Assembly (NCBI GenBank): GCA_009103225.1
Contig: RHPI01002910.1
Location: forward strand, 129,123-193,122
Origin: Chlorokybus atmophyticus
Lineage: Eukaryota > Plantae > Mesostigma and Chlorokybus algae
DNA length: 64,000 bases
Reading direction: 5' to 3'
Part shown: piece by piece, positions 31,640-36,288 of the stretch
Position numbering within the stretch: the stretch's first letter is position 1
How the letters are laid out: each line of letters begins with the position of its first letter
Notes under the pieces: generated by a model
Told to the model about the DNA's origin: nothing
Databases searched by the model: none
Seen by the model: only the letters and a program-made list of their open reading frames with translations
Program-made: the position numbers and the translations under genes

Positions 31640-31856
31640 CCTGCTGCGCCCCTTGCCCGATCTCGCAAGGAATTTATCAACTACTTGGTAACACTGGGTC
31701 ACGGTGGATACAGGGACCCTGAACTACATGAATCCCTTGCTGGTCAACTCCTCTCTGTTTTCATTCGCGGCCAGCGAGTGAAACAAGGGAGCTCGGTTAG
31801 CAGTGGTGCTGAATCCCTGCTAAGCTTAATGTGCTGGCCTGGCTATATCTGCACTC

Positions 31857-31883
31857 GGGCGGGCGGGCGGGCGGGCGGGCGGG
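31857..31883 (+). repeat. (GGGC)6GGG G-quadruplex-type tract upstream of the ABC locus
   Basis: gggcgggcgggcgggcgggcgggcggg. Confidence 0.85.
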
Positions 31884-32272
31884 TGAAGGCGGCGCTGGGG
31901 TTGAGGTGGGTCAAGGGATGTGCTGCAATCTTCCAATCCTCATGCCATGCGTCACTGCCGTCGTCATGTGCATGGGGGTCAATTGCGTGAGCGTGTACGC
32001 ATGCTCCCGACCGCTTGGGGTTCTTTTTGTTGGTGCTTCAATTGTGTATGGAGCTTGCATAGATGTACTGTGGAGAAGAGGCCGTTGGCTGCAAATCACA
32101 TCCGGTTGCGGCAACCGCTCAGTGCTAAGTCAGGGTTTCGTGAGGCGTTGGCTCATGAACAATCAATGCAACATGCAGCTTGCCGTCCCAATGTCTTGCC
32201 GCTGATAGTGACCTGTGATCTCCAGTTGGTGTGGATGCACTTTTGTTCGAGTTGCTGCGTGCATGGCAAGCT

Positions 32273-33667
32273 ATGACGCTTGTGCTCAGTGGCCTTTGCA
32301 AAAGCGTGCCGCTGTCCACCAGCACTAAGAGCAGCCAAACCAACCTCCAGCAAGTGCACAGCGACTGGGAGGTAAGCCGCCGCCGGGATTGCATAACAGA
32401 TTGCAGTGCAGTTTGATACATTACTTATTACTGTTTTTGCTACATGCGCCAGCTTTTTGCCATCACTCTTTTGAGCTAAGGCTCTTGCGTACGGGGACAA
32501 TGCTCATCCGATCTTTCTTGTCACATCTGCAGCATGTCTTCACTCATCAGTCATACATATAGACATAGAGCGCAATGAGCATGCCATTGTAGCCTAAGTA
32601 ATGAGGGTGTGGTGCATGCCAGTATCCAGCTTTGTCTTGCTCTGAGCCTAGGCTGTTAAGTTTGGTTGCAATGGAGCTTCTTGTAATGGCTTCAAGGCTG
32701 CAGCACTGTTTGCAGTCAGGCTAAACTTCTGCATCAACATACTTCGCTTTTAGGACTCGGAGCATCCTGGGCAGCGGAGCATTTTCAAGGCCCTTGACCT
32801 GACTGTCGCCTCGGGCGCCCGCTGCGTGGTGACGGGGCCGTCCGGCTGCGGGAAGAGCACCCTGCTGCGCGCCATCGCCCTGCTCGACCCTCTCGACGGC
32901 GGACAACTGAGCCTGAACAACTTGACTGTTGAAGAATTGGGCGTGTGCGAGTGGCGCAAACAGGTGTGTGTTACTGTATCTCTTTCAAAGCAGTGAAACA
33001 GTGTAACGTATTTATGCATTGTTACACTGTTGCATGTAACATTGTAAACAATGAGACAGTGGTTATACTATTATGGAACCATGTAATATGTTCCAACACT
33101 GTACATAAGAATGTTTTGCTTGGGCATACACGACTGATGATTTGATCTTTGGTGTTTTGGGTTTCCAGGTTGCATACGTGCCGCAGCGTGCACCGATCAG
33201 TCCCGGCGGGTCCAAATCGCCCGCAGAGCTTGCGTTGGTTGTTGAAGGGTTGCAGATCAACAAGCGTGACGGCCGCCTTTCGGTACATGCTGTTGCATGT
33301 AACTATGTCCTGCTTGTAGCTATGTCACTAGGCTTACGGTCCTCTTCTCTCAATGCAGCCGCAGGCCGGTTTGTTGTTGGCCGCCCAGCGCGTCGCGTCT
33401 GCGTGGGGCATCGACGAGGACACGTTCGCTCGTCCGTGGGACCAGTTGAGCGGCGGCGAGTCTCAGCGTTGCGCCCTCGCGGTCGCGGTTGCCACCCGTC
33501 CGGCGGTGCTGCTGCTGGACGAGCCCACGTCCGCCCTGGACGAAACCACCTGCCTGGCCGTCGAACACACGATCGTCTCGTCGGGATTCACCGTCGTGTG
33601 GGTCACCCACAGCCACGCACAGGCCCAACGCGTGGCCACGCAATACCTGGAACTCCCTCAGAAGTAG
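32273..33667 (+). CDS. Stand-alone ABC transporter ATP-binding subunit, FetA/YbbL/STAR1 type (ORF1 of a bicistronic locus), 243 aa
   Basis: Exons 32273-32371, 32754-32963, 33169-33282 and 33359-33667, all phase 0. Walker A TGPSGCGKSTLLR, Q-loop VAYVPQ, signature LSGGESQR, Walker B/D-loop LLLDEPTSALD, H-loop WVTHS; TAG 33665-33667. Confidence 0.9.
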
Positions 33668-33685
33668 AGTATTGTCCTCTCAGTC

Positions 33686-35694
33686 ATGGTTTCGTTTCAA
33701 GATGATCCAAGCGCTCAAGACAGCGGGCCCAACCTGTCTTTCACCGCCACGGTGCTCACGGGTTTGGTGATGGTGTTTGTCGGTGCTGTCACGCGGTACT
33801 TGCGTTTGGACCTCGAGAAGAAGATTGCCGTCGCATCGGTGCGATCCATCCTGCAGCTGACGGTGCTGGGCTACGTGCTCACACCCATCTTCACAGCCAA
33901 CAACCTCTACTTGGTGCTGGCGCTGACGGTGTTCATGCTTCTTGTTGCTGCAACGGAAGCACAGGTACTACTTGCTAGTGGTCGGCATCATGCAACATCA
34001 TTGCCATTATGCTCCTTGCACATGTGTCGCTGCTTATTAATGTTTCTCACATCATGTCATCATAGAGTTTCTACCATGTATAATAAGCTGTTGCTTCAGC
34101 ACAGCCATGCTTGCGCTCTTATTCTCTCGTTGCTAGCAACGCATTTTCGACCAGTATGTAAAACGTTTGTTGAGCAACTGAAGTTACTGTGCAACATGTG
34201 CGGATTGCTAACTTGGTGCGAGTTTTGTGCTGGCTGTTTCAAAGTGTTTGTTGTGTTGTTATGCAGGCCCAGCTACAGTACAGTTACCGCGGCATGTACA
34301 CCGACACCCTCTTTGCAATGGCTAGCGGGGTTGGTGTGAGTTGCGCCATTGGCATCTTCCTGATTGTGCGTCCTCGGCCCTGGTGGCACCCCAACACGTC
34401 CGTCCCGCTGTGGGGGATGATCCTCGGCAACGCGCTCACCGCCGTCGCGCTGGGACTAGGAACCACCATGAACACGCTGGGAAACAGAGCGGAGCGAGAC
34501 AACATCGAGTACATGCTAGCAAGAGGCGCACGTAAGTGATGAAAGGCTATCAGCTGGATTGCCACATCAGCTGATGCGCAATTACATGACGCATTGTCCT
34601 TGGTCTTCCTTTTGTATTGTGCAATCTTTTATTGGTAAGAGCTCGCGTATTGGCGTATACTATTGTTGCAAGTGTAGTGTTGAGATTAGATGAAACCATG
34701 TATGTCTATGTTTATGTTCACTTGCAGCATAGGACTGGAGTGATGTGCTGCAATGCTGGCTTGCAGGTTTGTGGGAGGCTTGTTTGCCTATCGCAAAGGC
34801 GGCCGTGCTTCGCGGTCTCACCCCAACCCTCAACAGCATGTCCGTCATCGGCCTTGTGGCTATCCCTGGCATGATGACGGGGCAGATTCTCGGCGGGGCC
34901 TCACCCATGCAGGTAAGGAATGCACCATGACACTAGGCACCTGTGGACATGGCACTCCTCCAAGCGTCCACATTGTGACACATGCTGTGCAATGCTCGCT
35001 TGCAGGCAGCTCGGTACCAGATCGTTATCATGTTCCTGCTCGCCTGCAGCGCAACTACTGTTGTCATCACCTCTGTTCTGCTCACACTACAGGTACAGAG
35101 GAAAACACCCCACTTTTCAGGCTTCAGTCGTCACAATTCAGTTGTCACAGTCCATACACCGTCGCATGCATCTGCTGGCCATCTTGGCATGTACCCCTGC
35201 ATCATCAGTCCATTTTCACAACATGCATCTCTTGCTATGTGTTTTGTACATGACCCTCACTCACTGCATGGACACAGCACTCTCAAAGCAACGCTTTGCC
35301 AACAACGCGGTGCTGTTTCAATTGCAACAACGTATTGTGCAAAGTCCCTCACAGTGTGTCTATTAGTAGCAGTGTGGATGCACCTACACCTTGTTGCACA
35401 GTCCATTGCAGATGTCATTGTCCAAACACCAGGCTCAATCGCTCCCCTTACACCGTCTGACCTTGCCAGGCCTTGACGGACAACATGCAGCGGCTGCGTC
35501 CTGAGCGTCTGACTCCCAAGCCGAAGGGCTCCGACGTAGTGATGCGTCTGCTGGCCGCCATCTGGCAGCTGCTCACCCTTGTGGGCCGATGCCTATCATG
35601 GCCGTGCCGATACTGCGTCGACCGCGTCAGGAAGCGGCAGGATCCGCACCACTTCAGTGCCGTGCCCGTCGAGGAAGCGGAGGAGACGGCTTAG
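33686..35694 (+). CDS. UPF0014 family ABC permease, FetB/YbbM/STAR2-ALS3 type (ORF2 of a bicistronic locus)
   Basis: ATG 33686; exons 33686-33964, about 34267-34531, 34769-34912, 35007-35091 and 35471-35694. Motifs LDLEKKIAVASVRSILQLTVLGYVL, PLWGMILGNA and GLVAIPGMMTGQILGGASPMQAARYQIVIMF; TAG 35692-35694. Confidence 0.92.
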
Positions 35695-36107
35695 AACTGT
35701 GAGGGTCCGTTGACTTGTGTGGGGGTGAAGCCGAACCAGCGGACCGCGTACGCCACATCCCACCCAAGTATGAAATGAACAACCAGTTAGCAGAAGAAGA
35801 CAAGCAGAGAAGGAGCAGTTCAGACTGATGCACAGGCAGTGTTTTTGGTTTTGAGGTGTTGGTTGGGGGATGAGAGTCAGATTTGGTATATACCTTTGTG
35901 CGGTTGTGAAGGGCAGTAGTAGTACTAGACTGGTGTGTGCAAATTGAGGTACGAAGATTGTGTTTTTCCCAGCACCTTCTGGCAGCCTTGATTGTAAAAA
36001 CGAAATTTTCTTATAGAGCAGCCACGCAGATATTGGTCCACTTTAGCGACTCTGAACAGGTCGATTACTAATCAGTTTACCTGGCTGGAGCACTATGGTT
36101 CACACTG

Positions 36108-36286
36108 CAGGCGTCACGCGATTGTAGTGCACAATGGGAGGCAATTGTGCACTACAATCGCCATACACTGTGGTGATGTATGGCGATTGTTAACCCAGGC
36201 GTCTCGCGAATGTAGTGCACAATGGGAGGCAATTGTGCACTACAATCGCCATACATTGTGGTGTGATGTATGGCGATTGTTAACCC
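36108..36286. repeat. Two tandem ~88-bp units, each with two overlapping inverted repeats
   Basis: Units start at 36108 and 36196 (CAGGCGTC...). Stem A GCGATTGTAGTGCACAAT/ATTGTGCACTACAATCGC (18 bp); stem B ACAATCGCCATACA/TGTATGGCGATTGT (14 bp). Confidence 0.92.
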
Positions 36287-36288
36287 AA

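Follow-up and report, generated by a model that had tools for sequence, protein, structure and literature searches.

Introduction

Polycistronic mRNAs have been described by the hundreds in green algae, with leaky scanning as the favoured explanation (Gallaher et al. 2021; PMC7896298). In the bicistrons of these algae the first open reading frame (ORF1) has a weak Kozak context, and the sequence before the second one (ORF2) is depleted of AUGs (Duenas et al. 2025, PNAS; PMC11892635). The same study tested leaky scanning in vivo in Auxenochlorella and found that the output of ORF2 depends on the Kozak context of ORF1. Here we analyse a nuclear locus of Chlorokybus atmophyticus, located on the + strand of a 64-kb stretch of genomic DNA (64,000 nucleotides; referred to below as the window), in which an ORF1 for an ABC ATPase is followed, after a spacer of 18 nt, by an ORF2 for a UPF0014 permease. 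Probably this locus gives rise to a bicistronic mRNA, the second frame of which would be reached by leaky scanning past the first.

The closest described counterpart is a pair of genes of Auxenochlorella protothecoides, UTEX250_A04.07340.1 (ABC ATPase) and UTEX250_A04.07335.1 (UPF0014) (PMC11892635, Dataset S01B; InterPro table in supplementary file 6). Dataset S01B gives this pair an ORF1 of 729 nt, a 5' untranslated region (UTR) of 16 nt and an inter-ORF region of 147 nt, and counts no start codons in the 5' UTR, in ORF1 or in the inter-ORF region, with 18 in ORF2. Dataset S02B of that study lists five other trebouxiophytes with a colinear pair and gives no hit for C. reinhardtii. The orthologue of Chlorella sorokiniana is listed there with PacBio support, and the Auxenochlorella pair belongs to the curated high-confidence bicistronic set. 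The Chlorokybus locus agrees with it in protein families, gene order, ORF1 size (729 vs 732 nt), the ATG-free state of ORF1 and inter-ORF region, and the 18 ATGs of ORF2. The differences are the host (a chlorophyte there, a streptophyte here), the spacer (147 nt vs 18 nt) and the leader, which in Auxenochlorella is 16 nt long and free of upstream ATGs, whereas in Chlorokybus it measures at least 73 nt, contains an intron and carries two upstream ATGs. Orthology with the Auxenochlorella pair was inferred from domain content and from a tree lacking the Auxenochlorella sequence.

The locus resembles green-algal polycistrons in general (PMC7896298; PMC11892635) in having two complete ORFs per mRNA, a spacer that is short (18 nt, against published medians of 40 and 183 nt), a depletion of AUGs ahead of ORF2 and a good ORF2 context. 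It differs from them in that its ORF1 is about twice the median length and codes for a full enzyme subunit that partners the ORF2 product. The ORF1 Kozak context of those polycistrons is weak; that of the Chlorokybus ORF1, with G at -3 and A at +4, is not clearly so.

The same two families occur in the bacterial fetAB (ybbL-ybbM) iron-export operon, and several homologues found in this work are named FetAB subunits by their sources. The order of the bacterial operon is ATPase followed by permease, as in Chlorokybus. In contrast to the algal locus, the bacterial homologues carry Met at the usual rate of the family and their cistrons are translated independently; the algal genes have spliceosomal introns and do not group within the bacterial clade that was sampled. 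The land-plant genes STAR1 and STAR2 (ALS3) are unlinked, each lying on a chromosome of its own in rice and in Arabidopsis. Their products, an ABC ATPase and a UPF0014-type membrane protein, reportedly form one transporter (Huang et al. 2009, Plant Cell). A two-gene locus conserved in both branches of Viridiplantae is also represented by the CDC26-TTM3 bicistron, the proteins of which are unrelated to the ATPase and permease and the ORF1 of which is very short.

We found no literature linking Chlorokybus with nuclear polycistrons. The ATG-free leaky-scanning design itself is already published, including the orthologous chlorophyte locus, and the idea is not new. New are the streptophyte host, the haptophyte and protist cases, the two upstream ATGs together with the leader intron, and the contrast with lineages in which the genes are separated.

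Structure of the locus

ORF1 (732 nt, 243 aa) consists of four exons, all in phase 0, separated by GT..AG introns. ORF2 consists of five exons, starts at 33686, ends at 35694 and comprises 1002 nt (333 aa). All motifs of the ATPase are intact: Walker A at residue 61, the signature at 171, Walker B at 191 and the H-loop at 223. The UPF0014 family (PF03649) matches three exons of ORF2 with E-values from 7.5e-15 to 5.5e-18, and the source databases name the homologues FetB. ORF2 exon 2 is 100% identical to the protein EP00898_Chlorokybus_atmophyticus_P007958 (EukProt; jgi Chlat1 8163; P0001), which at 333 aa has the same length as the ORF2 model. Pfam and representative searches were run exon by exon; the exons were joined only for counting, local blastp and MAFFT. 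Together the products of ORF1 and ORF2 are predicted from their domains to be subunits of one FetAB/STAR1-STAR2-type ABC transporter.

The exon model was compared with RNA contigs from three runs of two studies, referred to as X1 (identical to the window), X2 (about 99% identical) and X3 (about 92% identical). X3 probably represents another Chlorokybus lineage. The features of the locus are as follows.

31880–31905, + strand: 3' end of the non-coding 5' UTR exon; 26 otherwise unaligned letters of the X1 RNA contig match here
31906–32225, + strand: 5' UTR intron, 320 nt, GT..AG, with 12 ATGs inside; loose end of the X1 contig and GT/AG ends
32226–32272, + strand: second exon of the leader, 47 nt long, containing the upstream ATGs 32235 and 32263; X1 spliced contig
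32235–32276, + strand: upstream ORF 1 (uORF1), 13 codons, its TGA overlapping the ORF1 start (ATGA); translation and context
32263–32328, + strand: upstream ORF 2 (uORF2), 21 codons, out of frame, running across the ORF1 start; translation and context
32273–32371, + strand: ORF1 exon 1, N-terminus of the ATPase, start context caagctATGac; junction 32371/32754 in X1 and X3 contigs
32754–32963, + strand: ORF1 exon 2, Walker A; Pfam ABC_tran, E=7e-10; junctions in X1, X2 and X3
33169–33282, + strand: ORF1 exon 3; junctions in X1, X2 and X3
33359–33667, + strand: ORF1 exon 4, signature motif, Walker B and H-loop, TAG stop at 33665–33667; Pfam ABC_tran, E=1.9e-9
33668–33685, + strand: inter-ORF spacer, 18 nt, ATG-free; crossed by X2 and X3 contigs and by X1 record 2 (from 33654)
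33686–33964, + strand: ORF2 exon 1, UPF0014/FetB-type, start context tcagtcATGgt; Pfam UPF0014, E=7.5e-15
34267–34531, + strand: ORF2 exon 2; Pfam UPF0014; junctions in X1, X2 and X3
34767–34912, + strand: ORF2 exon 3; Pfam UPF0014; contig junctions
35006–35092, + strand: ORF2 exon 4; contig junctions
35470–35694, + strand: ORF2 exon 5, TAG stop at 35692–35694; five-exon model
35695–36021, + strand: 3' UTR with TGTAA at 35993; RNA contigs end at 36021 (X1) and 36092 (X2)

The first entry covers the 3' end of the first exon only. A perfect (CGGG)7 microsatellite (31856–31883) overlaps the start of this RNA-supported portion and reaches upstream of it.

RNA contigs joining the two reading frames

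The spliced contigs lack all seven coding introns, with the junctions exactly where the model puts them. Record 3 of X2 (2051 nt) starts in ORF1 exon 2, passes the ORF1 stop, the spacer and ORF2 and reaches into the 3' UTR, and record 4 of X3 (1925 nt) runs from the leader to ORF2 exon 4; both are contigs and not single reads. On spliced contigs from which all introns are gone (X2, X3) there are thus two ORFs that have separate start and stop codons. A differing exon structure in RNA that includes ATGs was one of the refuting observations named in an earlier reading of this DNA made from its letters alone (the first-pass annotation); the contigs match the modelled exons and join ORF1 to ORF2. 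Neither TGTAA nor AATAAA occurs between ORF1 and ORF2, and a TGTAA is present at 35993, shortly before the contig ends.

The ATG-free path to ORF2

The spliced path 32276–33685, which comprises ORF1 after its start codon and the spacer (747 nt), contains no ATG in any frame. This had been noticed in the first-pass annotation, the exon coordinates of which are exact, and our recount likewise gives zero. The spliced ORF1 also bears out that the ATPase has no internal Met, its only Met being the initiator. The surrounding sequence is different, as had been stated there for the introns and the first exon of ORF2: the three introns of ORF1 contain 9, 8 and 5 ATGs (22 in total) and ORF2 exon 1 contains 4 including the start, the whole of ORF2 having 18 per 1002 nt (15 in frame, 3 out of frame). 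No contiguous ATG-free stretch of 747 nt exists on either strand of the 64-kb window, the GC-matched stretches of this length contain 10–12 ATGs on average and 3–4 at minimum, and two of the four longest ATG-free gaps on its + strand fall in ORF1.

How surprising the zero is depends on the null model. Equal base frequencies predict 11.6 ATGs in 747 nt, the base composition of the path itself 7.5 and a first-order Markov model 5.5. These simple expectations overstate the case because the ATPase family is poor in Met and the codon usage is GC-rich. For out-of-frame ATGs in ORF1 shuffling of the codon order predicts 1.3 (P(0)=0.24) and synonymous resampling 2.1 (P(0)=0.09). As to in-frame ones, the ATPase core of distant homologues contains 1.9 Met on average and none in 8 of 50 (16%). 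A null that respects codon usage and the Met-poor family yields about 3–4 expected ATGs, so that the first-pass estimate of 7–12 is too high even against the composition-based values of 5.5–7.5.

Leader and start codon contexts

In the X1 contig the 5' UTR intron 31906–32225 is spliced out; the mature leader is therefore at least 26 + 47 nt long and includes both upstream ATGs, the position of which in the leader had only been suspected in the first-pass annotation. Translation likewise returns the 13-codon uORF from 32235 that had been described there, with its TGA overlapping the ORF1 start. No ATG occurs in 31832–31905. The X3 contig is colinear with the genome through at least 32073–32225 of the leader intron; besides the spliced leader there is therefore one that is unspliced or starts elsewhere, giving an ATG-rich isoform. 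Such alternative leaders, with the 12-ATG intron spliced or retained in part, could gate translation of both ORFs.

The contexts of the four ATGs of the spliced mRNA up to ORF2 are the following.

32235, + strand: first upstream ATG, T at -3 and C at +4
32263, + strand: second upstream ATG, T at -3 and G at +4
32273, + strand: ORF1 ATG, G at -3 and A at +4
33686, + strand: ORF2 ATG, G at -3 and G at +4

By the letters at -3 and +4 the contexts appear graded from weak to strong along the mRNA, and the ORF2 start is the fourth ATG and the first one past the 747-nt desert. None of the listed differences of X3, a list which is incomplete, alters either upstream ATG. The first-pass impression that the ORF2 context is stronger than that of ORF1 concerns +4 only (G vs A), both having G at -3, so that the Kozak argument is thin.

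Comparison with other lineages

Other tandems of the two genes were found using the permease as a handle and fetching contigs from other organisms. The ATGs were counted from the ORF1 start (or contig start) up to ORF2.

Helicosporidium: spacer of 46 nt, 0 ATG in 766 nt
L001, marine RNA-like contig from Logan run ERR1711871: spacer of 11 nt, 0 ATG in 496 nt
L002–L007, metatranscriptome and Logan contigs: ATGA overlap, 1 in-frame ATG in 652 nt
L012: spacer of 33 nt, 0 ATG in 744 nt
Pavlova lutheri (haptophyte): spacer of 3 nt, 0 ATG in 708 nt

The ORF2s of these ATPase-then-permease tandems have 13–29 ATGs each. A check of orthologues, named in the first-pass annotation as a way to probe the depletion, accordingly returns an ATG desert in Helicosporidium, L001, L012, Pavlova lutheri and Auxenochlorella. 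In four lineages taken together the ORF1s contain no out-of-frame ATG against 9.9 expected from codon shuffles (joint P of about 1e-5 assuming independence), and the ORF2 controls of the same four lineages are at or above their null. The in-frame side of the depletion is seen from the protein: Met is absent from the core in 31 of 35 algal-type ATPase homologues compared with 8 of 50 bacterial and fungal ones (Fisher's P of 1e-11, ignoring kinship). Where the ATPase gene lies away from UPF0014 it has internal Met, 3 in Chlamydomonas incerta and 6 in Mucor. One genomic contig (L013), which has introns and a start called as GTG, was left out of the ATG counts.

In a quick tree Chlorokybus groups with Mesostigma, and the eukaryotic permeases fall outside the sampled bacterial clade. 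The models of Mesostigma viride (P0002, 554 aa) and [Myrmecia] bisecta (P0333, 556 aa) fuse part of the ATPase to the permease; both have no Met from residue 2 up to the permease part, the first internal Met being residue 274 in the former and 240 in the latter. Each of these single-gene models probably conceals a bicistron. The tandem of Pavlova lutheri is located at L014:708-2456 and L015:745-2493, and the true start of its ORF1 is the ATG at 738 in L014. To our knowledge, no two-gene mRNAs of the ATPase-UPF0014 type have been described in haptophytes. In the Pavlova lutheri contigs the tandem is followed by a long ribosomal L19 gene.

At a locus of Chlamydomonas eustigma (L010:8001-15146) an ATPase without internal Met is followed on the same strand by a 569-aa model holding UPF0014 exons. 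These exons are colinear downstream but lie within a separately annotated gene; the locus may be another unrecognised bicistron, in this case in a chlorophycean. Two further proteins, P0012 (527 aa) and P0013 (610 aa), have the subunits fused in the opposite order, permease and then ATPase, with Met throughout, which is a different solution to making both subunits together. The pair Cre11.g475432/475400 (ORF1 of 744 nt, 0 ATG), considered as a Chlamydomonas orthologue, was rejected as an unrelated BRCC36 pair. Neither STAR1 nor STAR2 of land plants is among the 120 listed matches of either protein search.

Proposed mechanism of ORF2 translation

In the mechanism that we favour, one spliced and capped mRNA would carry the ORF of the FetA/STAR1-type ATPase followed by that of the FetB/STAR2-type permease. 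Some of the scanning 40S subunits would initiate at the ORF1 ATG with its G at -3 and A at +4, and those which pass it would find the next 747 nt free of ATGs and start translation at ORF2. The shared mRNA and leaky scanning would therefore provide both subunits of one transporter from one mRNA. The two upstream ATGs in weak context probably add to the leak: a ribosome translating uORF2 would bypass the ORF1 start, and if scanning resumes, the next ATG it can meet is that of ORF2. Selection would have cleared the ATPase gene of Met codons as well as of out-of-frame ATGs, a state common to distant lineages that keep the tandem.

That both ORFs are translated from the same molecules by leaky scanning we infer for Chlorokybus because of the in vivo tests in Auxenochlorella (PMC11892635). 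The choice of mechanism follows from the conserved three-frame ATG desert, because it is predicted by scanning through ORF1 and is predicted neither by reinitiation nor by a separate ORF2 transcript. The suggestion of the first-pass annotation that selection keeps the path to the second start clear gains support from the spliced contigs, the recurrence in independent tandem lineages, and the signature and in vivo tests of PMC11892635.

Several observations weigh against leaky scanning on a bicistronic mRNA. On the RNA side, contigs cannot prove single molecules and are compatible with an extra ORF2-only transcript, and in X1 the ORF2 contig, which begins at 33654, is about twice as deep as the ORF1 contig. 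The ORF1 of 732 nt is long compared with the published medians of 291–357 nt. The leader contains two upstream ATGs in its spliced form and is rich in ATGs in the unspliced form of X3. The ORF1 ATG has a purine at -3 and is not clearly weak, and the ORF1 start of Helicosporidium has G at both -3 and +4. In X3 a G-to-A change at 32306 replaces Val12 of ORF1 by an in-frame ATG. No other listed X3 difference creates an ATG; 70 further differences are unlisted, so that the ATG count of X3 is incomplete. Finally, with the family-aware null the Chlorokybus locus alone gives a P of only about 0.01–0.05, and the comparative statistics ignore phylogeny.

Two alternatives keep the bicistronic mRNA and change the route to ORF2. 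Termination-reinitiation, in which ribosomes would finish the ATPase and their 40S subunits start anew at the ORF2 ATG close by, would make the desert irrelevant or secondary. The spacers, very short or overlapping, agree with it (18 nt here, 3 in Pavlova, 11 in L001, ATGA overlap in L002–L007, 33 in L012 and 46 in Helicosporidium), and so does a yeast study reporting bicistronic expression by reinitiation (PMC11952965). Yet this route does not predict the conserved loss of ATGs in three frames over an ORF of 243 codons, the spacer of the Auxenochlorella orthologue is 147 nt, and in green algae the balance of ORF1 to ORF2 shifted when the Kozak context was manipulated. In eukaryotes, moreover, reinitiation is inefficient once a long ORF has been translated. 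We consider it unlikely as the main route; the short or overlapping spacers may leave room for some reinitiation. An equally unlikely main route is bypass by the uORF, with initiation at 32263, translation of the 21 codons and rescanning to ORF2, so that use of the uORF would set the ORF1:ORF2 split. Both upstream ATGs are indeed in the mature leader and persist among the listed X3 differences (an incomplete list), and uORF2 overlaps the ORF1 start and ends at 32328, after which the next ATG is that of ORF2. Against this stand the T at -3 of both upstream ATGs and the Auxenochlorella orthologue, which has the desert with a 16-nt leader without upstream ATG; uORFs are therefore unnecessary for the conserved design.

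The remaining alternatives dispense with selection for scanning on a shared mRNA. Two overlapping monocistronic transcripts, with a start site for ORF2 inside ORF1 exon 4, could have been merged in the contigs: the X1 contig of ORF2 starts at 33654 and is deeper than that of ORF1, and a contig that spans two genes is no proof of one transcript. We regard this as very improbable, since contigs cross the ORF1-ORF2 junction in two diverged lineages (X2 and X3), the C. sorokiniana orthologue has PacBio support and the Auxenochlorella pair is in the curated high-confidence set, and overlapping transcripts give no reason for a conserved ATG-free ORF1. Least probable of all is chance, namely that a GC-rich gene of a Met-poor family happens to be ATG-free. 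The family baseline (1.9 Met per core, zero in 16% of distant homologues) and the mere 1.3–2.1 out-of-frame ATGs expected speak in its favour. The zero, however, recurs in at least five separate tandem lineages whose ORF2s match the null, Met is present where the ATPase and permease genes are not adjacent, and the window contains no contiguous ATG-free stretch of 747 nt. Leaky scanning past an ORF1 cleared of ATGs thus remains the reading that we prefer.

Origin and implications

It is conceivable, and we put it forward only tentatively, that the ATPase-permease bicistron is an ancient eukaryotic "operon" which arose from a bacterial fetAB-type operon, AUGs having been purged from its first cistron for cap-dependent scanning. 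On this view streptophyte algae, chlorophytes, haptophytes and other protists would have retained the unit, or handed it on intact, over roughly a billion years. Its two genes would have come apart only in such lineages as land plants, core Chlamydomonas and fungi, with Met codons returning there. Lineages with separated genes, which appear to have regained Met, represent a natural experiment.

If our reading of the locus is correct, the mechanics of translation constrain a protein: a subunit of 243 residues is kept free of internal Met, and its codons avoid out-of-frame ATGs, so that ribosomes reach the start of its partner. Chlorokybus, which belongs to the earliest streptophyte branch, and the haptophyte case suggest that leaky-scanning two-gene mRNAs extend beyond the chlorophytes. 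Such loci are mishandled by annotation pipelines, as in the fusions of Mesostigma and Myrmecia, and a test for ATG deserts could flag hidden bicistrons.

Sequence beyond the transcript

Just beyond the 3' end of the transcript, at 36108–36287, a unit of 88 nt occurs twice in tandem with a 94% match. The unit apparently has internal inverted repeats and may be a small mobile element.

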